From IMG/VR virus record IMGVR_UViG_3300050120_000230, positions 62,001-126,000 of that record: a stretch of DNA of 64,000 nt. One strand, written 5' to 3'. The notes beneath the pieces are model-generated. The model did not search any database. It worked only from the letters and a program-made list of their open reading frames with translations, and was not told the origin of the DNA. Each line of letters opens with the position of its first letter. The stretch's first letter is position 1. This document shows positions 2,472 to 63,654 of the stretch, one piece after another. Both the position numbers and the translations under genes were made by a program.

Positions 2472-5223
2472 GGTCCCACTTCAGAACGCCCAACAGGTTG
2501 TCCAACTTGTTGTCGATGATGGTCTGCTCCATCGCCTGATGGTCGAAGGGTAGGTTCTTGAACCACTGCGGAATGTGCGGCTCGTCGATAGGATAGGCGA
2601 TGCTGTCGATCTTCATCAGGTTCGGCTTGAGCTTGCACACGATGATCTTGGCGCCGTCGCCGATCCGCATGGAGTAGCGGTCGCCGCTGCTCTCACACAT
2701 CGTGTTCCAGTTCATGGCTGCCTTGACGTGGCCGGGCATGTTGACCTTGGCTTTGAAACCCGCCTTCATCTTCACCGCTTCGGACAGGCTCATGTTGCGG
2801 CCTGCGGCGTAGCGTTGGACGTAGTCGGTCAGTGCCGAGACTTTCTTCGGTGTGCCTTTTTCCCAGCCCGGCCGCGTGGAGAATTCCTTGCGGAACGTGC
2901 GGATTTGGTCGAACAGCATTTCCTTCTCTTCACCGCAAAGAAGGTCCATCAGCAATTTCTCAAGGAACGCCTGCATGAACTTGGGCGTGTCGGCGCGCTT
3001 CATGTCGAGGCCCATGGCCTTCAGCTTGCCGGGCTTGCCCTTGGTGTCCTGACGCTTGCCGTCCTTGTCATACATCAGCACGGCGTATTTCTTCTTCTTG
3101 ATGAAGAGTGCCTTGGAGGCCACCAGTTCGCGGCCTGCCGCGATGATGGCGCCACGAGCCAACGTCGTGTTGAACGTTTCGTGCATGAACTCGGGGAAAC
3201 TGCCGTTCACTTCTTCCGCAATGGCGTCGTAGAGAACGATGATGTTCTCGCGGGTCCATTCGAAATCTGCGTAGCGAGGGTCGTTCTTCAGAACTTCGTA
3301 GGCGCTGAAATACGAGCTATCGGTGTCGGCATAATAGATAGCAGCACCGCGATAATCGTACTCGCCCGTGATGACTTCGTTGATCTTCGCGTTCATGTGG
3401 CGAGCGATAGAACGGCCGGTCAACGTCACCGACTGACCAAGACGTTCGTCATAGAACCGCAGACCTTCGTTCAGAAGGGCGCCGTAGAGGGAGTTCAGCA
3501 AAATCTTACGAGCTTGTTGGCGCTGGTTCCAGAAACCTGCCCAGAAGAGGTGTTCCTTCTTCTTCGCCGGGTCGGTCTCAGCGTCGGCCAAGTTTTCGTA
3601 GTGAAGCTGTTTGCCCTGCATCTCCTGACGTTCGGAATACCACTTTGCCAGAAGCAGCGGGATCATGCCTTCCTTGTCCGTGCTGAACAGGGTGCCGTTG
3701 GCGGTGATGCAGACTTTGTTCTTCGGGTTGAAGACGTAATCGAACAGGTCCCGGCCAGACATGGTCTTGCTGGTGCCGTCTTCGAAATCGAGCGTCACCG
3801 GAGCGCCGTCTTTGGCGTGCATGTGATCGACTTCGAGCGTGCGGAAAATACCTTCCCACGCTTCGGCCCGGTCGATGCCACTGGCGATGCGCTGGGCGAC
3901 AAGTTCCATGGTCTCGGTCAGCCGAACTTGGCCGATGATCGTTTCCGGGCTCATGTTCAGGGCGCGGATGGCAGACGGATACAGCGAGTTGATGTCGCAG
4001 CAGCCAATCTCGTTATGCAGGCCCTTCTTCGGGTCAGCCACGTAGGCTCCGACCACCGGTGTCCGGTCATCGTCATCGTCCGACTCGGAATCATCGTCCT
4101 TGTCGAGCGCATACTCTTTCGGGCGGCGGTTCGGCACGACGAAGCCCATGTCGTGCATTTCGTTGATGATCGCCTGCTCGACGAGGGCCACCGATCCCAT
4201 GGTGGTCTTCAGAAGCACACAATTCGAGTGCGCGACCTGATTGGCCAGTTCGATGAACTTCTTCTTCTCGTCGATCTTGACCAGCAGCATCGTGTCTTGC
4301 CGGTTGTATTCGATGAATCGCTTGAAATCCTTCTTGTAGAGATCGTCGAGCGTGCCTTCGTAGACGGTCTTGTTCTCTCCAACTTCAATCTCGCCGACAT
4401 AGTCGAGGCGATAGGAGTGAAGCTGTTGCGGGTTGTGCTTCTGATAGAGTTCAAGGTAGTCAAGGTGAACTCGGCCCACGAGATCGTAGGTCGTGTGCAT
4501 CCGCTTGAACTTCATATATTCGCGAACCCGAGGAAGCTGGTTCCACAGGCAGAGATCGCGCGTCGAATCCTTACTCATCACTCGCGTGATGCGGTTCACG
4601 AGGTATGGAATATCGAAGCCCGTCGAGTTCCAGCCGGACAGCACATCTGCGTCGTCGATCAATTCAATGAACGACTTGAGAAGGTCCACTTCGTTGTCGA
4701 AGAGCACTGTGTCTTCAAACTGATCGACGATTGCCTGTGCTTCTTCGAGGCTGTAGGTCGGCGGGCACAGCACCATGGTCATCAGGCGCTTACCCAACGT
4801 CGTGTGCAGCGTAATGGCGGTGACCGGATTGAACGGATCGTCGGTAGGCGCGAAGCCGCGTTTCGGGTCGAAATCAACCTCGATGTCGAAGAAGCCGACG
4901 TTCAGTGTCGGGGCTTCGATGCCCTTGTAGTGGTCGGCGAGCGAGCGGAACACCGGGTTGATGTCGCTCTCGAAAATGCGGGGCGGTTTCTTGTTGGTCG
5001 GGGCGAACTGGATGCGGCCGACTTCCTTACGGAACTTCTGGCCGTTGTTGCTTGTGAACTTGCGGCAAGTGTCTCCGAAAATGGAAGTGTGGCTACCCTG
5101 CGGGTGCTCGTAATAGAAAACGTGCTCGGCATCGAACTCCGTCAGGACTCGTTCGTTGTTGATCCGTTCTGCGACGTAGATTTTGTCTTTCTGACGATCA
5201 TAGATCGCATCCACATAACTCAT
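2422..5223 (-). CDS. family B DNA polymerase (T4 gp43-like)
   Basis: Exo motifs FDIE and WNSTGFDIPY; Pol motifs DINSLYPS, KILLNSLYG, YADTDS, KKKY. Confidence 0.97.
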   Translation of the reverse strand: MSYVDAIYDRQKDKIYVAERINNERVLTEFDAEHVFYYEHPQGSHTSIFGDTCRKFTSNNGQKFRKEVGRIQFAPTNKKPPRIFESDINPVFRSLADHYKGIEAPTLNVGFFDIEVDFDPKRGFAPTDDPFNPVTAITLHTTLGKRLMTMVLCPPTYSLEEAQAIVDQFEDTVLFDNEVDLLKSFIELIDDADVLSGWNSTGFDIPYLVNRITRVMSKDSTRDLCLWNQLPRVREYMKFKRMHTTYDLVGRVHLDYLELYQKHNPQQLHSYRLDYVGEIEVGENKTVYEGTLDDLYKKDFKRFIEYNRQDTMLLVKIDEKKKFIELANQVAHSNCVLLKTTMGSVALVEQAIINEMHDMGFVVPNRRPKEYALDKDDDSESDDDDDRTPVVGAYVADPKKGLHNEIGCCDINSLYPSAIRALNMSPETIIGQVRLTETMELVAQRIASGIDRAEAWEGIFRTLEVDHMHAKDGAPVTLDFEDGTSKTMSGRDLFDYVFNPKNKVCITANGTLFSTDKEGMIPLLLAKWYSERQEMQGKQLHYENLADAETDPAKKKEHLFWAGFWNQRQQARKILLNSLYGALLNEGLRFYDERLGQSVTLTGRSIARHMNAKINEVITGEYDYRGAAIYYADTDSSYFSAYEVLKNDPRYADFEWTRENIIVLYDAIAEEVNGSFPEFMHETFNTTLARGAIIAAGRELVASKALFIKKKKYAVLMYDKDGKRQDTKGKPGKLKAMGLDMKRADTPKFMQAFLEKLLMDLLCGEEKEMLFDQIRTFRKEFSTRPGWEKGTPKKVSALTDYVQRYAAGRNMSLSEAVKMKAGFKAKVNMPGHVKAAMNWNTMCESSGDRYSMRIGDGAKIIVCKLKPNLMKIDSIAYPIDEPHIPQWFKNLPFDHQAMEQTIIDNKLDNLLGVLKWDLGETVEAMGDEFFVFS

Positions 5224-5259
5224 GATAAATACCTACGGTGACGATATATTTAGGCAAGA

Positions 5260-5967
5260 ATGTCCAAGAAAAAAACTACAGAAGAATTTATTTTTCAGTC
5301 CCAGAAAATCAATGGTGACCGTTATGATTACTCTTCGACTACTTACCTAAGAGCCCATGAGCATGTTGTAATAACCTGCAAAGAACATGGGTCATTCAGT
5401 CAACGAGCATGTGACCATCTTCATCAACAACAAGGATGCCCCAAATGTGCTCATAACTATCCACTGGATCGAGATGCTTTCATCCAAAGAAGCCGTGCGA
5501 TGTATGGAATGAAATTCCAAGTCATATCGGAATTCAAAGGAGTCAAGTATTCAATAACGTTGTCTTGCGAAAACCACGGGGATTTCAAGATAAAGGTCGC
5601 CCAATCTCATTTTCAAAAAGATGGTGGTTGTCCAAAATGCGTTCTTCAAAAAAGACTTGATAACCTGAAACCCGGAAATACCAGCAAGATCGAGACTAAG
5701 TGGCTCGATGATTTAGGTGTTCCTTTGCGTCAACATCGAATTGATTTGATCGAGGGTAGCGTAGTCGTCGATGGTTTCGATCCGAACACAAATACTGTGT
5801 ATGAGTGCTACGGTTCTTATTGGCATGGCAACCCAGAACTATATTCACCGGAAGACATCAATCCAACCCTCGGTGTGAGTTTCGGCCATCTTTACCAAAA
5901 GACCCTGCGGCGGGAAACTGTTCTCCGCGCCGCAGGATTCAATTTGGTCATGCGTTGGGTTCGTTAG
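5260..5967 (+). mobile_element. free-standing homing endonuclease-like gene (Zn-ribbon repeats plus Vsr/PD-(D/E)xK-like domain)
   Basis: two CxxHG...GCPKC units; VDGFD...YECYGSYWHGNP; AT-richer than flanks; opposite strand to neighbours; TAAATA at 5226-5231. Confidence 0.75.
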
Positions 5968-6227
5968 CGGCGGCCGGTGACTTCGAGAATTTCTTCGACG
6001 GTGTCGAACTGAATCTTCTCTTCTTCGATGGACGCCTTGTAGGCAACGCGGGCGGCCTTCATCAGGGTGCCCGGCTTCCAGCCGAACTCTTCGGCGATGG
6101 CCTTGGCGGTGTCCTTGAGACCAGCCTTCAGGTCGTCGGTTTCTTGGAACACGCGCATGGCGGAATCCATGAAGTCCTTCAGCTTGACGCGGTCGGTCGA
6201 AGTCAGGGTTTCGGTGTCGATGGCCAT
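5964..6227 (-). CDS. small dsDNA-binding protein (T4 DsbA / GapR-like)
   Basis: 87-aa helical protein with DLKAGLKDTAKAIAEEFG...LMKAARVAYK pattern; TTGACA-N18-TAAGCT promoter upstream. Confidence 0.65.
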   Translation of the reverse strand: MAIDTETLTSTDRVKLKDFMDSAMRVFQETDDLKAGLKDTAKAIAEEFGWKPGTLMKAARVAYKASIEEEKIQFDTVEEILEVTGRR

Positions 6228-49908: not shown

Positions 49909-50172
49909 GGGTAATAAGGACACCATCTCTGCCCTCAAAGGAGTTACGCGGCGAGCGCGTAGTCCATGCTAACGTTGTCGTTGGCATTTAGAAATGTGAA
50001 CTGATTGGCGGTCGTTTCTTACCGGGATTCTCGCAAACCTTTTACCGTCGCCAATCGAAAGCTGTTCGCCCCCGCACTTCCCGGTGACAACGCCGGAGAA
50101 AGATTGGTGGAGGCGCGGGGATTCGCACCCCGGTCTTGCCGACTTATTCTGATGTGGTCATCAAATCCAAGG
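49900..50172 (-). ncRNA. ssrA: circularly permuted (two-piece) tmRNA
   Basis: acceptor piece ends CGCCTCC-ACCA at 50105; coding piece starts GGGGGCG at 50073 (G3-U70 Ala identity); tag ANDNVSMDYALAA-stop at 49985-49944; outer ends approximate. Confidence 0.95.
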
Positions 50173-50188
50173 CTATTTAGCGATTTTT

Positions 50189-56600: not shown

Positions 56601-59543
56601 ATGGCTACACTCGTTTCACCGGGCGTCGATGTCGAAATCATTGACGAATCGTTCTATGGCGGCGCTGGTCCGGGCACCGTTCCGCTCGTCGTTTTCGCGA
56701 CCGCAGCGAACAAGGCATCTCCTTCGGGAACCGGAATTGCCCCCTATACCGCTCCTTCCCAAGCAGGAAAGCTCTTCCTTGCGACTTCGCAACGTGAGTT
56801 GATCCAGAACTTCGGCACCCCGAACTTCAAGACTGTTCAGGGCACCCCGGTTCATGGCTACGAACTGAACGAATACGGGCTGCACGCAGCCTATCAGTTC
56901 CTCGGTATCTCGAACCGCTGCTACGTTCTGCGCGCAGACATTGACATGTCTCAGCTTGAGGCATCTTCCACGGCTCCGGTCGCCCCGCCGCTTCCCGGCA
57001 CCTACTGGCTCGACCTGACCCAAACCCAATTCGGTATCTTCCAGTCGAACGGTAACCCGTCGTCTGGTCTGGCTTGGGAAACGCAACCGACGCTCGCCGC
57101 GACCGCTGGCAACATCACCACGACGATGGATGACGTGGACGTTCCGTCCGCTTCTTTCGGCGCGGATGGCCAATTCGCTGTCGTCGTCACCATGTCGAAC
57201 AATCTGATCTATGAAAAGCTGAACGGTGCATGGCTGCAAGTCGGTTCGACTGCTTGGGCCGCCGCGCGCCCGACAACGGTCACCGGCCGCTCGAACCCGA
57301 GCCTGATCGCCACGACCGACACCTTCGAGATCAATGGTCACACGGTTGCATTCGATCAGATTTGGGACGGCACCGCCTACACCATTCAAGGCACTGGCGC
57401 CCTTTCGGAAATCGTCACGAACATCAACGCTGCTGCTATCGCGAACATCGTCGCCACCGTCTCCGGCGCTGGCGCTCTGGTTATTCGCGAATCGGCTGGT
57501 GGGAACATCGTTCTCAGCGCCCTGAACGGCACCCCGCTGACCACGCTCGGTTTGGCTCCCGGCCTGACGGCTGGCGTCACCGTTGACCAAACCAACACTC
57601 CGCAATACCCGGCCAACCGTGCCGCAGGTTCGGTGTGGGTCAAGGGTAATCCGCCGAACCATGGTGCAAGCTGGAAAGTCAAGCTTTGGAACGCAACGGC
57701 TGGTGCATTCGTCACCGTCCCGGCTCCGTTCTACCCGTTCAACTCTATCCTGAGCGACGGCAACTCCTCGAAGGACCAAGCTGCTTCGGCCGCATTTGGC
57801 ACTATCGCAACCGGAACGATCTACGTCGGCTTCGACGCTTCCAACGGCACGCAACAACTGCGTCGTTGGAACGGCACTGGCTGGGAAAACCTGATCTATG
57901 AAGCAGGCACGATCCCGCCGACCAGCCCTCCGGCAGACGGCACTTTCTGGTATAACACCAACTTCCGCGCCGACATCATGTATGGCGATGGCAATCAGTG
58001 GCTCGGCTACGCTCGTAAGTTCACGGCAACCGATCCCGCTGGCGTTCTGATCTCGGGCTCCGCTCCGACGACCCAGTCTGACGGCACTGCTCTGGTTGAC
58101 AACGATCTGTGGATTGATTCCAGCGATCTCGAAAACTACCCGATGCTGTATCGCTACGATACGACGTTGGCCCGTTGGAACCTGATCGACAACACCGACC
58201 AAACCTCTCCGTTTGGTATCGTGTTCGCCGACGCTCGCTCGAACTCTGGCACGAACTACACCAACAACCCGCACCCCGGCACGTACAACTACGGTTCGGA
58301 ACTCTCGGTTGATATGGTGCTGTCGAACTTCCTCGAACCCGACGCGCCCGATGCACGCACCTACCCGGATGGTATGCTGCTGTTCAACACGCGTTATTCG
58401 ACGAACAATGTCAAGGAATGGAAGCCCCTCTACTTCGCGCAGGGCGGCTTTGATCCGAACACGAACTTCACCCAATCCACCTATCACAACAGCGGCAGCA
58501 ACGCGATCTTCCCGGTGCTCGGCACCACGGGTATCTGGGTCACGGCAAGCGGCAATGACGTTGACGGCACACCCTTCATGGGTCGCAAGGCCGTTCGCGT
58601 CCTGATCGTTCGCTCGCTCGAAGAGATGATTACTCTGAACGACGATATTCGTTCGGAACTTGTCTACTTCAACCTGCTCGCGGCTCCGGGTTACCCGGAA
58701 CTGATGAACGAGATGGTGACGTTGAACACCGATCAGAAGGAAGTTGCCTTCATCGTTGGTGACACTCCGATCCGTCTGACTCCCGGTGGCACCGATGTCA
58801 CTTCGTGGGCGAACAACGGTAAGAACGTTGCTTCCACTGGTGAAGACGGTCTCACCGTCGCCAACGAATACGTCGGCGTCTACTACCCGTGGGGTCTGAG
58901 CACCGATCTGAGCGGCAATGAAGTGATGATCCCGCCCAGCGCCATCGCGCTGAGCACTCTGGCCTACAACGACCAAGTTGCTTACCCGTGGTACGCCCCG
59001 GCTGGCTTCCGTCGTGGTCTCGTGACCAACGCTTCGTCGGTCGGTTACCTGACTTCGGAAGGCGAGTTCAAGCCCGTCATCCTGAACCCCGGTCAGCGCG
59101 ACGTTCTTTACACCAACAAGATCAACCCCATCGCCTACATTCCGGGCCGTGGTCTGGTGGTCTACGGTCAGAAGACGCTCAACGCGGATCAAACCGCACT
59201 CGACCGCGTCAACGTCGCCCGTCTTGCCAACTACTTGAAGTATAACCTTGACAACATCGTCAAGCCGTTCCTCTTCGAGCAGAACGATTCGCAAACTCGT
59301 GCTTCGGCTCAAGCAACCGTTTCAGGTTTCCTGAATGGTCTGGTTGGTCTGCAAGCCCTGTCTGACTACGCAGTGATCTGCGACGACTCGAACAACACTT
59401 CGAGCCGCATCGACGCGAACGAACTCTGGATCGACATCGCCATCAAGCCGCTGCACGCCATCGAGTTCATCTATATCCCGGTGCGTATTCTCAACACCGG
59501 CTCCGACCTTGCAACGGCCGTCTCACAGACAGTCTCCCTGTAA
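56601..59543 (+). CDS. contractile tail sheath protein (gp18-like)
   Basis: LVSPGV..EIIDES N-terminus; YYPW, PPS, WYAPAG.RRG, LYTNKINPI, YGQKT, DRVNVARL, FLFEQND; TAAATA at 56563-56568. Confidence 0.95.
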   Translation: MATLVSPGVDVEIIDESFYGGAGPGTVPLVVFATAANKASPSGTGIAPYTAPSQAGKLFLATSQRELIQNFGTPNFKTVQGTPVHGYELNEYGLHAAYQFLGISNRCYVLRADIDMSQLEASSTAPVAPPLPGTYWLDLTQTQFGIFQSNGNPSSGLAWETQPTLAATAGNITTTMDDVDVPSASFGADGQFAVVVTMSNNLIYEKLNGAWLQVGSTAWAAARPTTVTGRSNPSLIATTDTFEINGHTVAFDQIWDGTAYTIQGTGALSEIVTNINAAAIANIVATVSGAGALVIRESAGGNIVLSALNGTPLTTLGLAPGLTAGVTVDQTNTPQYPANRAAGSVWVKGNPPNHGASWKVKLWNATAGAFVTVPAPFYPFNSILSDGNSSKDQAASAAFGTIATGTIYVGFDASNGTQQLRRWNGTGWENLIYEAGTIPPTSPPADGTFWYNTNFRADIMYGDGNQWLGYARKFTATDPAGVLISGSAPTTQSDGTALVDNDLWIDSSDLENYPMLYRYDTTLARWNLIDNTDQTSPFGIVFADARSNSGTNYTNNPHPGTYNYGSELSVDMVLSNFLEPDAPDARTYPDGMLLFNTRYSTNNVKEWKPLYFAQGGFDPNTNFTQSTYHNSGSNAIFPVLGTTGIWVTASGNDVDGTPFMGRKAVRVLIVRSLEEMITLNDDIRSELVYFNLLAAPGYPELMNEMVTLNTDQKEVAFIVGDTPIRLTPGGTDVTSWANNGKNVASTGEDGLTVANEYVGVYYPWGLSTDLSGNEVMIPPSAIALSTLAYNDQVAYPWYAPAGFRRGLVTNASSVGYLTSEGEFKPVILNPGQRDVLYTNKINPIAYIPGRGLVVYGQKTLNADQTALDRVNVARLANYLKYNLDNIVKPFLFEQNDSQTRASAQATVSGFLNGLVGLQALSDYAVICDDSNNTSSRIDANELWIDIAIKPLHAIEFIYIPVRILNTGSDLATAVSQTVSL

Positions 59544-59570: not shown

Positions 59571-59600
59571 GGGCGGCCTCGCAAGGGCCGCCCTTTTCTT
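59571..59600 (+). terminator. intrinsic terminator
   Basis: GGGCGGCC-TCGCAAG-GGCCGCCC followed by TTTTCTT. Confidence 0.85.
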
Positions 59601-60101: not shown

Positions 60102-60548
60102 TCCGCATATTCAGTCTCGAATACATATCCGAGTTCTGGTGCATATACTATCTTGCGCGTAGGGTGCATTAGCGCGTGATAGGCGCCGCCGCCGCCGAAT
60201 GGTCGGCCGAAAATGTTGCTCTGTTCGTTGATGCCGCGTTCGCCGCCGAAGGTCATCCAGTGGACTAGGATACGATCCTCTTTCACCCACTTGACCCAAG
60301 CACGCGTGGTTCTCCCACCGGGATGACTTTTGTCCTGCCACGGAAACCGCACCACTACCTCGTCACCGACCTCCAATGAGTTCACCCACGCAGCCAATCC
60401 GTTTTTTCGGAGGCGCTTGATTTTACTCAGACGTTGGCGGGCTTTGCGTTCTCGTTTTCGAATGGCCTCGGGGCTATGCTCAAGTTCCCACATGAGTTCA
60501 AGGTCGCCCTTTTCACCGGGACGCAACTGCTCTGACATACCTAACATG
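60050..60548 (-). CDS. hypothetical basic protein
   Basis: GGAGG RBS before the ATG at 60548; TTGACG promoter upstream. Confidence 0.6.
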
Positions 60549-60621
60549 CGGGTCCTCCGGCTGTCTTGAGAACAAAATACCCCGCTATTAGATTTCGTCA
60601 ACGAAAATAAATACATGTGCT

Positions 60622-60882
60622 ATGCACCGGAGAGGTTCTCGACCTATCAAAGTCTTCGTCAAGTCGAAGATCGGTTTAGAGTGCTTTCTCGTGGAGAACG
60701 ACGATATTTTCGACGCGGCTCTACCTTTCATACGCCGCCTCCATGGCTTGGGCTACAGTAAAGCGATCACCTCGAAGACTCAGAATACAATGGCAAGTCT
60801 ATTGGTTCACAAAGAGACGGCCGAGCCAGCAATGGTCACAAGTTGCCGATTACATACAAAGAACTACCAAAGTAAAAGCTAA
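60622..60882 (+). CDS. hypothetical protein
   Basis: TAAATA at 60608-60613. Confidence 0.4.
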   Translation: MHRRGSRPIKVFVKSKIGLECFLVENDDIFDAALPFIRRLHGLGYSKAITSKTQNTMASLLVHKETAEPAMVTSCRLHTKNYQSKS

Positions 60883-60884
60883 AT

Positions 60885-61104
60885 ATAACTGAACGATGGA
60901 TGTCGTTCCTGCAAGGATTTCGGTCCTGAACCTATAATCTCATGTGTTGGCGACTAGGAGACGTGCGCTTAGCGTGTAAAGGTAAGGGTCGGGTAAGCTC
61001 CGACTGGCATATGGGAATGCGGGAGTTCACCCGCTAAAGCAGTTATGTTTCAACTTCGGTTGGACGTTAGGCGGTCGGGGGTCAAACCTCGGCCGTCTTT
61101 TTTC
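60885..61104 (+). ncRNA. candidate multi-hairpin ncRNA
   Basis: TAAATA at 60880-60885, closing stem ATAACTG/CAGTTAT, consecutive hairpins including two UUCG loops, terminator at the 3' end. Confidence 0.55.
61070..61104 (+). terminator. intrinsic terminator
   Basis: GGCGGTCGGGGG-TCAA-ACCTCGGCCGTC-TTTTTT. Confidence 0.8.
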
Positions 61105-61201
61105 ATTTGCAAATAAAACACCGAGTTTAATGAACTATCCTAAATAAATACACAAGCCGGATGAATAATCGGCAATCAATTTAGATACATGAGGTGATGT
61201 C

Positions 61202-61786
61202 ATCGCTACGCTACAGAATTTTGGAGTCCCTCTCGGCGGCGGTGCTGGTCGCGGTGGTTTGCTCATGCCGAAGACCCGACAGAAGTTCCGCGTGCGTGTC
61301 ACGCAGTTCGGCCCGGTCAACGGTGGACTTGAACTCACCCAACAGGTGGTAACAGTCGGTCGTCCGCAAATGCAGCAGCAAGCGCAGGAAGTCCACTCCT
61401 ACAACTCTATCGGTTACTACGCCGGTAAGGCCGTTTGGCAAGAAATCTCGATGACGGTTCGTGACGATGTTTCGAACGCCGTCAGCCGTCTTGTCGGTCA
61501 CCAGATGCAGAAGCAGATGAACTTCTTCCAACAGACTTCTGCTGAAGCAGGCGCCAACTACAAGTTCGGCATGTTCATCGAAACCCTCGACGGCGGCAAT
61601 GACGCTGTTCTGGAACAATGGATTCTGGAAGGCTGCTTCCTCGCATCCGTCAACTACGAATCGTTCGACTATTCGTCCAGCGACGCAATGACCATCGAAA
61701 TGAGCATCCGCTACGACAACGCGACCCAGCAGGGTGGCCTCATGCCCGTTAGCCCGGAACTCGGCGTCGGCCCGATGCTCGCATAA
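61202..61786 (+). CDS. tail tube protein; probable ATC start
   Basis: LMPK...FRV, RP, YYAGK..W, W.LEGCF...Y...DY, I.YDNA pattern; GAGGT RBS 6 nt before the in-frame ATC at 61202; TAAATA at 61141. Confidence 0.85.
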   Translation: MATLQNFGVPLGGGAGRGGLLMPKTRQKFRVRVTQFGPVNGGLELTQQVVTVGRPQMQQQAQEVHSYNSIGYYAGKAVWQEISMTVRDDVSNAVSRLVGHQMQKQMNFFQQTSAEAGANYKFGMFIETLDGGNDAVLEQWILEGCFLASVNYESFDYSSSDAMTIEMSIRYDNATQQGGLMPVSPELGVGPMLA

Positions 61787-61801: not shown

Positions 61802-63208
61802 ATGGTGGATTATTTCGTTCGCAGCCCTCGGCAAGCTACTACCATCTATGGTTTGGATGGTAATAGCGCGCCGAGAAGCAGAAGTCAGTTCTACGTTCGG
61901 TTCCGCAGGACTAGCAATGGCCAAGCGAGTAGCGGATGGCAAGACAATCTGGGGTTCATGGTCAAGTCGTTGGATCGACCGTCCGTGCAACCCCAGCTTG
62001 ACGAAGTCAACCAATATAACAAGAAACGCTGGATCACTACCGGCTTCAAGCTGCAACCCATGCGGATCGTTCTCTACGATACCGCAGACAGCTTGGTCAT
62101 GCGGATGTGGGATGAGTATTCTCGTTGGTATTTCGGCGACTTCAACCAAGACGATGAAACTCAATTTCGATATGACGTGACGACCGCTGATTTCCTCGGT
62201 GATGACATCGGCTTTGGTTTCGTGCCTCGTCCATCGGCGGCGTCAACTGATGGTAAGGACTCTTCACTCGATCTGAACTCACAATTCTTCTTCGATGCTA
62301 TCGAAGTCTATCAAGTCTTCGGTGGTGAGTTCACGCAGTTCGATCTCATCAATCCCAAAATCGGCACGTTTGACCCGGACGAACTCGATTACTCGGCTTC
62401 CGAGCCCGCGACGATTTCGATGACGCTCAATTTTGAAGCGATCATCTATCGCAACGGTGGTGCACCGACACCGATCAGCAGTAATTCCGACATCGCTGCC
62501 GTGTTCGATGAAGACTTCGACGGTGACACCTTCGATGTGACCGGCGCGGCCGTGCGACACAATCTCTCGACGATGTCACCTTCGTTGATCCCGTTCGGCG
62601 TCGATGACTTTCGCCGCGATCCGATCTCGGAAGCTACCGGGCTTTTGGACAATTCGGGTAACACCATCGGCGGCGGCGCCCTTGGGCAATTCGGTAATCT
62701 GGATTTTGGATCACTGCGCGCAGCCGTGCGAGCAGGGAAGGGCATCGCGGGAGATGTCTCCTACTTGGCCAGTGGCAACATCGGCCTATCCACTCTCTTG
62801 AACTTGCCGGTTGGAGGATCGTCCTCAACGATTAACGATCTACAATCGCGCCTTGGCCTGCCGCAACAGTCCCCGCGCGCGATCCTCGGTTCCACACTTG
62901 ACGCTGCCACGGGCGCTCTTAAGGGGCGCGGCGGCGGTAGTGAGTTCGGAGACGACTACATCGACGATAATCTCGTTGGCGGTGTCGCGGCTAGTGCCTC
63001 CATCGACGACAGCAGTATCGGTGACCAATTGACACCAACTGGTCAGAGCGGATTGCTTCTGAACTCGCAGTCTTACGGCGTCATCAATGCACAACGTCCG
63101 AGTTACAGCCAAATTGGCTACAACGACAGCTATTCGACTTCATACAGCAGCAACAGTAGTGATGACAGTCTGTCAATTTCTACTGATTCGGACCCCATCG
63201 ATATCTAA
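61802..63208 (+). CDS. tube-fold baseplate/tail protein
   Basis: VKSLDRPSV....NQYNKKR, LINPKI..FD.DELDYS tube-like motifs; follows the tube gene. Confidence 0.7.
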   Translation: MVDYFVRSPRQATTIYGLDGNSAPRSRSQFYVRFRRTSNGQASSGWQDNLGFMVKSLDRPSVQPQLDEVNQYNKKRWITTGFKLQPMRIVLYDTADSLVMRMWDEYSRWYFGDFNQDDETQFRYDVTTADFLGDDIGFGFVPRPSAASTDGKDSSLDLNSQFFFDAIEVYQVFGGEFTQFDLINPKIGTFDPDELDYSASEPATISMTLNFEAIIYRNGGAPTPISSNSDIAAVFDEDFDGDTFDVTGAAVRHNLSTMSPSLIPFGVDDFRRDPISEATGLLDNSGNTIGGGALGQFGNLDFGSLRAAVRAGKGIAGDVSYLASGNIGLSTLLNLPVGGSSSTINDLQSRLGLPQQSPRAILGSTLDAATGALKGRGGGSEFGDDYIDDNLVGGVAASASIDDSSIGDQLTPTGQSGLLLNSQSYGVINAQRPSYSQIGYNDSYSTSYSSNSSDDSLSISTDSDPIDI

Positions 63209-63654
63209 TGGCAAAGTCTAAGTTCAGTCAGGGACAATATGCTCCCAATCATCCCGAAAAGATCATTGGCAAGACGCCAATTGTCTATAGGTCTAGTTGG
63301 GAAATGAGCTTGATGCGGGTATTCGATGAGAACCCCGCAGTCCTGCAATGGAGTTCCGAAAGCATTTCTATTCCGTATCAAAATCCGTTGACTGGTAAAT
63401 GGTCTTTGTATCTTCCCGACTTCTTCGTGATATATATGGATAAGAACAACGGAAAGCACGCAGAGATCATTGAGATCAAACCGTGGAAGGAAGACCCGAG
63501 AAACCCGGCCAAAGCCAGTGCTCGCACTAGACTGACACAGGCTATCAATCAAGCAAAGTGGACCGCTGCTATGGTCTACTGTCAGAAACGGAAATGGCAT
63601 TTCCGCATCATGACTGAGCGTGATCTGTTCGGCCTACCCGGTAAGAAGAAATAA
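63208..63654 (+). CDS. head completion nuclease (T4 gp4 / TnsA-N-like)
   Basis: YRSSWE, WSSE...IPY, YLPDF, EIKP, N.AKW.AA...C, F.IMTE. Confidence 0.9.
   Translation: MAKSKFSQGQYAPNHPEKIIGKTPIVYRSSWEMSLMRVFDENPAVLQWSSESISIPYQNPLTGKWSLYLPDFFVIYMDKNNGKHAEIIEIKPWKEDPRNPAKASARTRLTQAINQAKWTAAMVYCQKRKWHFRIMTERDLFGLPGKKK

Follow-up and report, generated by a model that had tools for sequence, protein, structure and literature searches.

What lies between the tail sheath and tail tube genes of this 415-kb jumbo phage, where a first-pass annotation made from sequence alone proposed a self-contained late noncoding RNA of about 200 nt? We studied a 64,000-nt stretch (the window), positions 62001 to 126000 of the IMG/VR record IMGVR_UViG_3300050120_000230, and asked whether the locus encodes a discrete structured RNA, whether its fold is conserved, and whether it belongs to any described RNA class. 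The observation itself holds: the locus carries a folded RNA whose shape is preserved in at least 33 related giant phages and which matches no curated RNA family. The interpretation is only partly supported, since a discrete, structured, noncoding unit is backed by comparative data while transcription, late timing, and a role as protein sponge or assembly RNA rest on inference.

The locus and its predicted transcription unit

The sheath–tube gap contains several elements in addition to the candidate RNA. ORF 56601-59543 encodes a 980-aa tail sheath protein (PHROG 10581, E = 1.8e-257), the frame ending at 61786 encodes a tail tube protein (PHROG 4542, E = 1.4e-52), and 61802-63208 encodes a second tube-like protein. 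The intervening 1.65 kb holds the sheath terminator (59571-59593), two minus-strand ORFs, a conserved plus-strand 86-aa ORF (60622-60882; 73% and 51% identity in L006 and L008, where the prefix L denotes related loci numbered in this study), and the RNA. The nearest cultured relatives are Agrobacterium phage Atu_ph07 and Sinorhizobium phage Phosso, while the PA5oct and Rak2-like jumbo phages are more distant. Every complementary segment listed in the first-pass annotation is present at the stated coordinates. The 225-nt stretch (60880-61104) folds at -81.5 kcal/mol compared to an average of -65.8 for dinucleotide shuffles (z = -3.6; 0 of 200 shuffles fold as well), and we find no conserved ORF, as the ATG of a 31-aa frame at 60942 is not kept in homologs. 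The features are as follows.

60879..60885 (+), CTAAATA promoter-like motif, with an inferred start about 6 nt downstream, near G60891
60891..61103 (+), whole predicted RNA of about 213 nt, from the predicted start to the terminator U-tract; ends inferred
60891..60908 (+), 5′ hairpin P0 (GAACGA/UCGUUC), outside the core
60909..61042 (+), 134-nt core
60909..60912 (+), 5′ strand (CUGC) of P1, the family-wide closing helix
60914..60927 (+), P3 hairpin (AGGAU-UUCG-GUCCU), with GGA/UCC pairs invariant in sequence
60924..60937 (+), invariant block UCCUGAACC-N-AUAA
60931..60934 (+), 5′ arm (CCUA) of pseudoknot PK1
60938..60946 (+), P4 5′ strand (UCUCAUGUG), pairing with 61008-61016
60952..60958 (+), invariant GACU-N′-GG, whose last four bases (UAGG, 60955-60958) form the 3′ arm of PK1
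60961..60975 (+), P5 hairpin (ACGU/GCGU), whose loop bases GCUUA (60967-60971) form the 5′ arm of a loop–loop contact
60976..60984 (+), conserved junction GUAAAGGUA (consensus RYAA-N-GRWA)
60987..61005 (+), P6 hairpin (GGUCGG/CCGACU), whose loop bases UAAGC (60994-60998) form the 3′ arm of the loop–loop contact
61008..61016 (+), P4 3′ strand (CAUAUGGGA)
61019..61034 (+), P7 hairpin (GCGGG-AGUUCA-CCCGC), with loop consensus G-A-N-N-U-N-A-C
61039..61042 (+), P1 3′ strand (GCAG)
61049..61064 (+), small variable 3′ hairpin (UUCAAC-UUCG-GUUGGA)
61069..61103 (+), intrinsic terminator (61069-61098 plus its T-run), a 12-bp stem with 8 G-C pairs followed by T6
61140..61151 (+), CTAAATAAATAC, the tube gene's own promoter-like motif, not part of the RNA

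Motif-level evidence suggests an independent transcription unit. CTAAATA is 8-fold enriched in the window (12 copies compared to 1.46 expected), and ATAAATAC occurs 6 times compared to 0.37 expected. Copies of CTAAATA lie 33 nt before the sheath ATG, 56 nt before the tube start, 24–33 nt before three other ORF starts, and 5 nt before the 5′ end of the phage's permuted tmRNA. By analogy with the tmRNA, the RNA would start near G60891, the first base of the 5′ hairpin. Every subgroup of homologs has a -10-like element at the same short distance upstream, with (C/A)TAAATA in the window's subgroup and TATAAT, TATATT, or similar elements in the others, whose tube genes are instead preceded by ATAAATAC-type motifs downstream of the RNA. 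Late expression is therefore plausible here but is not a family trait. An intrinsic terminator follows the RNA in the window, and a strong terminator also follows the core in L005, L006, L008, L010, L050, and L069, whereas no T-run terminator follows in the Phosso-like subgroup. A search of sequencing runs listed only 3 runs that hold this stretch, all of them DNA from peat and soil metagenomes, and no RNA run, and the transcript and its ends are thus predictions.

Homologs, helices, and tertiary pairings

Homologs are found across one clade of giant phages. A search for tube-protein relatives in IMG/VR yielded 14 loci, and nhmmer with the RNA hit six of them plus Phosso. The invariant blocks supplied a 20-base bait, TCCTGAACCNATAA-N12-17-GACTNGG, which hit 24 IMG/VR and 34 metagenome stretches. 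Two covariance models confirmed 33 distinct members in IMG/VR contigs, metagenome contigs, and Phosso, and rejected L028, a chance hit in IMG/VR. The bait also gave 6 hits in 185,579 prokaryote species genomes, the number expected by chance, none of which matches the covariance model. blastn of the locus against 50,697 phage records gave no match, and the Phosso copy finds only itself. The RNA is present in a single copy in the window's 415-kb genome and in Phosso, and in every locus where flanking genes could be read it lies between sheath and tube on their strand. However, distribution is patchy. The models find no copy in Atu_ph07, PA5oct, a complete 578-kb relative whose tube protein is 77% identical, or a 455-kb relative, and a scan with filters off of the sheath–tube loci of Atu_ph07, PA5oct, L009, L012, L014, L016, and L018 found no divergent copy. 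The RNA is therefore accessory, not essential.

Comparative data support most of the proposed helices. RNAalifold on seven sequences found P3, P4, P5, P6, P7, and the terminator de novo, with compensatory changes at 18 of 46 pairs. We then trimmed 30 distinct cores at P1 and aligned them with MAFFT, which is not fitted to any structure. On this alignment, 82.3% of cells pair compared to 62.3% when shuffled (0 of 500 shuffles reach it), and covariation is 0.521 compared to 0.189 when shuffled and 0.09–0.18 in partner-slid controls. Model-fitted alignments give 88–91% paired. P3 is 89% paired, with GC pairs in 33 of 33 sequences and a variable loop that is often a GNRA or UUCG tetraloop. P4 is 75% paired on the MAFFT alignment and 83–90% on model-fitted alignments, P5 is 91% paired, and P6 is 75–94% paired, and every pair of these three helices shows changes on both sides (all 4 pairs of P5 and all 6 of P6 covary). 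P7 is 98.7% paired, 4 of 5 pairs covary, and its closing G-C is invariant, although P7 is missing in two divergent members, L065 and L070. The 5′ hairpin is present with different sequences in most subgroups but absent in the Phosso-like subgroup, where a -10-like TATATT occupies its place. Likewise, a small 3′ hairpin of different sequence is present in L005, L006, L008, and L050.

Two helices of the first-pass annotation fail. GCAT/ATGC pairs in 61% of cells compared to 55% when shuffled and is no better than the slid controls, and its bases belong to the 3′ strand of the 9-bp helix P4. The outer stem ATAACTG/CAGTTAT (60885-91/61040-46) occurs only in the window's close subgroup and lies mostly upstream of the predicted start. 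Family-wide, the core is closed by P1, immediately 3′ of the 5′ hairpin, with a different, complementary sequence in nearly every lineage: CUGC/GCAG in the window, CUGA/UCAG in L010, GGUCACU/AGUGGUC in Phosso, and CGUUCGC/GCGAAUG, GUUCAUC/GAUGGAC, CUAGUGG/CCACUAG, GGUUGC/GCAAUC, GCUUGC/GCAAGU, AAACAG/CUGUUU, and UGGCU/AGCCA versus UGGCC/GGCCA elsewhere. Own-strand duplexes average -7.7 kcal/mol compared to -3.6 for crossed strands, although the boundaries were picked by eye and this test is partly circular.

We also found two tertiary pairings. CCTA/TAGG, previously listed as a plain hairpin, is instead an arm of an H-type pseudoknot: CCNA (60931-34) pairs with UN′GG (60955-58) in 33 of 33 sequences, with a covarying middle pair (C:G 18, U:A 13, A:U 2), and the 5′ strand of P4 lies between the two arms. 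A loop–loop contact between P5 and P6, which had been missed, is complementary in nearly every member with many different sequences (GCUUA/UAAGC in the window, GAUUA/UAAUC, UUUCUA/UAGAAA, UUUCCA/UGGAAA, CGCUA/UAGCG, UGCGAC/GUCGCA, UACUA/UAGUA, GCAC/GUGC, ACCA/UGGU, and CCCA/UGGG). When loops were delimited by the stems of the model alignment, without regard to complementarity, own-loop duplexes averaged -3.72 kcal/mol compared to -1.16 for crossed loops (0 of 10000 permutations reach that, although the permutation test does not correct for relatedness of the sequences). In fixed columns 69% of cells pair, and 4 of 5 pairs change on both sides. In contrast, a pairing of the P7-loop GUUC with the invariant GAAC was rejected because loop positions 2, 3, and 5 vary without compensation.

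Junction nucleotides are far more conserved than helices. Twenty-six positions are invariant in the 30-sequence MAFFT alignment, and seven more are at least 90% conserved. The invariant positions comprise UCCUGAACC-N-AUAA (also invariant in all 33 sequences), GACU-N-GG, parts of GUAAAGGUA (A70, A71, G73, and A76 invariant, and T75 nearly so), and G, A, and C of the P7 loop. The helices drift freely, and tube proteins of the same phages are only 52–87% identical. This is the signature of an RNA whose three-dimensional core is the functional part.

Comparison with described RNAs and rival explanations

The RNA matches no curated family. Rfam 15 at gathering threshold finds only the tmRNA at 49944-50181 in the whole window, and at E <= 10 positions 60500-61300 give only two terminator-like chance hits of 18.7 and 13.6 bits; the Phosso and Atu_ph07 loci give nothing relevant at E <= 10. 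ARAGORN reports no gene anywhere in the window, and the P7 loop A-N-N-U-N-A does not fit the T-loop pattern U-U-C-R-A. Literature searches for a described RNA at this locus found none.

Several described systems share some aspects of its architecture. Bacterial and phage Y RNAs (YrlA, Yrn1, and phiLo Yrl1/Yrl2) are likewise structured RNAs of about 100–200 nt closed by a terminal stem, in phages rich in RNA-repair and RNA-quality-control genes, but the RNA and Ro60 occur independently of each other, and a pseudoknot and a loop–loop contact are not Y RNA features. P4-P5-P6 has the topology of the purine-riboswitch "tuning fork", a three-way junction whose distal loops pair and whose junction strands are the most conserved part of the molecule. 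However, there are 4–6 Watson-Crick loop pairs instead of two, an extra pseudoknot, outer helices P1, P3, and P7, a total core of 134 nt, no antiterminator, and no Rfam match, and this is a resemblance of topology only. phi29 packaging RNA (pRNA) is also a phage RNA of similar size encoded among virion genes, built around a three-way junction with two loops whose complementarity is maintained by covariation. In pRNA the loops pair between molecules to form a ring on the portal of a small podovirus, whereas here they sit on adjacent hairpins and can pair within one molecule, although sequence alone does not distinguish pairing within from pairing between molecules. There is no sequence or Rfam similarity to pRNA (RF00044 was not hit), and the phage is a myovirus, with terminase genes annotated in its relatives (seen here in PA5oct). 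ROOL and GOLLD are phage-borne, elaborately folded RNAs of unknown function with conserved tertiary contacts, found by comparative analysis, but they are 500–800 nt, belong to Rfam families that did not match, and have different hosts and genomic contexts.

A small-molecule-sensing riboswitch or attenuator is possible but unlikely. The P1-closed core lies close to the promoter-like motif, has covarying helices, invariant junctions, a pseudoknot, and a loop–loop contact, and is followed by a terminator that could control read-through into the tube gene or, in relatives, into the Ph396-Ph397-Ro60 operon; in the Phosso-like subgroup an operon starts 250–680 nt downstream. However, promoter-like motifs (CTAAATAAATAC here and ATAAATAC-type motifs in relatives, motif matches only) lie between the terminator and the tube gene, a covarying extra hairpin separates P1 from the terminator, and downstream genes differ between lineages. 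When the 5′ half of the core is left out of the fold the terminator stays intact in the window, L005, L008, and L050, and so no antiterminator alternative exists. A Y RNA that tethers or gates Ro60, as YrlA and Yrn1 do in bacteria, is more doubtful still. In six lineages a Ro60 (TROVE plus vWA) operon lies directly downstream, and in Phosso, L015, L031, L034/L036, and L067 the RNA is 1–2 kb upstream of a bona fide Ro60 gene (E = 1e-47) on the same strand, which lies between the RNA and the tube gene and is preceded by two conserved unknown proteins. This fits the genomic criterion used to find bacterial and phage Y RNAs (within about 4 kb on the same strand; PMC4201824), and phage Ro60 proteins do bind phage-encoded Y-like RNAs (PMC12135203). 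Conversely, the window's genome (estimated 72% complete) has no TROVE match, most carriers lack Ro60 in the sheath–tube gap, and Atu_ph07 has Ro60 but not the RNA. The GNCGAAN0-1G (bacterial) or GGUCCGA (animal) motif expected in the 5′ strand of the terminal stem is absent from 60880-61104, P1 is variable in sequence, no T-arm or D-arm look-alikes occur among the conserved blocks, and there is no Rfam Y RNA hit even at E <= 10. Ro60-bearing phages also hold a separate conserved noncoding block containing GUCCGAAAGG closer to Ro60, which resembles the CGAA-containing Y-like RNAs of phage phiLo (PMC12135203) and is a better Y RNA candidate. We thus conclude that this RNA fails the Y RNA tests, although it shares a variable "RNA-metabolism" hot spot with such a candidate.

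A new self-cleaving or otherwise catalytic RNA that processes tail-cluster transcripts is also unlikely. The compact fold with two tertiary pairings and strictly invariant junctions amid drifting helices is the conservation pattern of ribozymes, and small ribozymes are common in phage genomes. However, no Rfam 15 ribozyme family matches, the topology does not appear to map onto the HDV, twister, pistol, hatchet, or glmS folds, and the unit has its own promoter-like motif and terminator, so no polycistronic transcript obviously needs cutting. We also considered that the RNA interrupts the tube gene as an intron, because that gene lacks a normal start codon, but homologs with a plain ATG also carry the RNA. 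Finally, the first-pass annotation had named a mere 3′ UTR of the 60622-60882 mRNA as the outcome that would overturn it. That ORF is a real conserved gene and ends exactly at the TAA inside CTAAATA, but the RNA is conserved with compensatory changes in lineages that lack the ORF (L005, L010, L019, and others), the invariant blocks persist across tube-protein identities of 52–87%, and the 31-aa frame and its ATG are not conserved. A 3′ UTR, terminator region, or short peptide without a functional RNA is contradicted by the covariation data and is very improbable.

A predicted trans-acting RNA of giant phages

Together, our results suggest a stand-alone gene for a noncoding RNA of about 210 nt, in a new family restricted, as far as searched, to one clade of soil and freshwater jumbo myophages related to Phosso and Atu_ph07. 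In its anatomy, P3 and P7 flank a three-way junction (P4-P5-P6) that is locked by the pseudoknot and the 4–6 bp loop–loop contact. We consider it somewhat more likely than not that the RNA acts in trans as a folded object rather than as an antisense guide. In this view the helices would serve only as scaffolding, since their sequences change freely, and about 26 invariant junction nucleotides would form one specific binding surface for a conserved partner, most likely a protein of RNA metabolism, with the RNA as cofactor, tether, or decoy in a ribonucleoprotein. The Ro60 operon directly downstream in six lineages is in favor of a link to RNA metabolism. The sequence family, the helices, both tertiary pairings, the synteny, the promoter-like and terminator motifs, and the absence from known families are established by our analysis, whereas transcription, the RNA ends, action in trans, and any binding to a partner and the nature of that partner are inferred. 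An aptamer-like architecture with invariant junctions fits a small-molecule binder or a ribozyme as well as a protein binder, and promoter types differ between subgroups, so timing is not conserved. One possibility, which we regard as unlikely, is that the core is not a protein handle but a self-sufficient functional RNA of a new class. It could be an orphan aptamer expressed as a free RNA that senses or soaks up a small molecule (for example a host immune-signaling nucleotide), an RNA that assembles into multimers through its loop–loop pairing as phi29 pRNA and the ROOL and GOLLD cages do, which would fit its place among the tail genes, or a new ribozyme.

Our analysis also supplies a promoter-like motif for this phage and corrects the annotation of Phosso, where the RNA, around 288,250-288,450 of PV764938.1, lies in an unannotated gap. 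Because Phosso is in culture on S. meliloti, expression, knock-out, partner pull-down, and structure determination are all directly feasible. Structured RNAs with several covariation-supported tertiary contacts and dozens of invariant junction nucleotides are rare, and almost every earlier example turned out to be a ribozyme, a riboswitch, or the core of a ribonucleoprotein. This one sits in giant phages whose biology is full of RNA-level conflict with the host, as they carry tmRNA, Ro60, and RNA-repair genes.

Gene starts and candidate promoter motifs in the window

Window features considered here are:
49944-50181 (-), permuted, two-piece tmRNA
60607-60882, conserved 86-aa ORF (60622-60882) with the motif before it
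61190-61210, region of the tail tube gene start
63208-63654, protein called 'head closure' by PHROG

CTAAATA is 8-fold enriched and ATAAATAC 16-fold enriched in the window (12 sites, for example 5247, 22087, 49787, 56562, and 61140), and most copies lie 9–84 nt upstream of a gene start on the same strand. This is a candidate phage promoter consensus, resembling the T4 late TATAAATA. The phage tmRNA, which is of the alphaproteobacterial type (RF04321, 123 bits), is preceded by TTGACT, an 18-nt spacer, and CTAAATA. This tmRNA hints at an alphaproteobacterial host. The 86-aa ORF has no family match, and ATAAATAC lies only 7 nt before its ATG, so that its mRNA may be leaderless or nearly so, while its stop codon overlaps the promoter motif of the structured RNA.

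The tail tube gene has no ATG, GTG, or TTG start. Its conserved N-terminus begins at ATC 61202, exactly where six relatives have ATG or GTG. An in-frame TGA lies at 61190 and an out-of-frame ATG at 61197. Either this is a rare ATC start behind GAGGTGA, or the assembly carries a 2-nt indel (TCATC). Finally, the 'head closure' protein (PHROG 218, E = 1.5e-42) also matches the Pfam TnsA-like endonuclease N-terminal domain (E = 3e-20).

Members of the RNA family without hairpin P7

Two divergent members of the RNA family lack hairpin P7 altogether, so P7 is peripheral to the core:
L065 (locus of one divergent member), 2255-2384
L070 (locus of the other), 175-297

Noncoding sequence and accessory genes in the gap of related phages

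Coordinates in the loci of relatives are:
L003 (Phosso), 2034-2730, conserved noncoding sequence
L002 (Atu_ph07), 5354-6003, unannotated gap between the Ro60 gene and the tube gene
L004 (PA5oct), 4305-5921, sheath-tube gap

In Phosso, and likewise in the related loci L015 and L067, about 600 nt of conserved noncoding sequence lie between the RNA and the Ro60 operon. This sequence includes GGTCCAAGTCGTCCGAAAGGATG, which resembles the Ro-binding motif, and is a candidate true Y-like RNA. The annotated 81-aa CDS at 2371-2616 overlaps it and may be spurious. In Atu_ph07, by comparison, the 650-nt gap has no Rfam hit and no copy of the structured RNA. In PA5oct the sheath-tube gap holds a Hef-like homing endonuclease gene instead. 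The gap is a hot spot for accessory insertions across this phage group.
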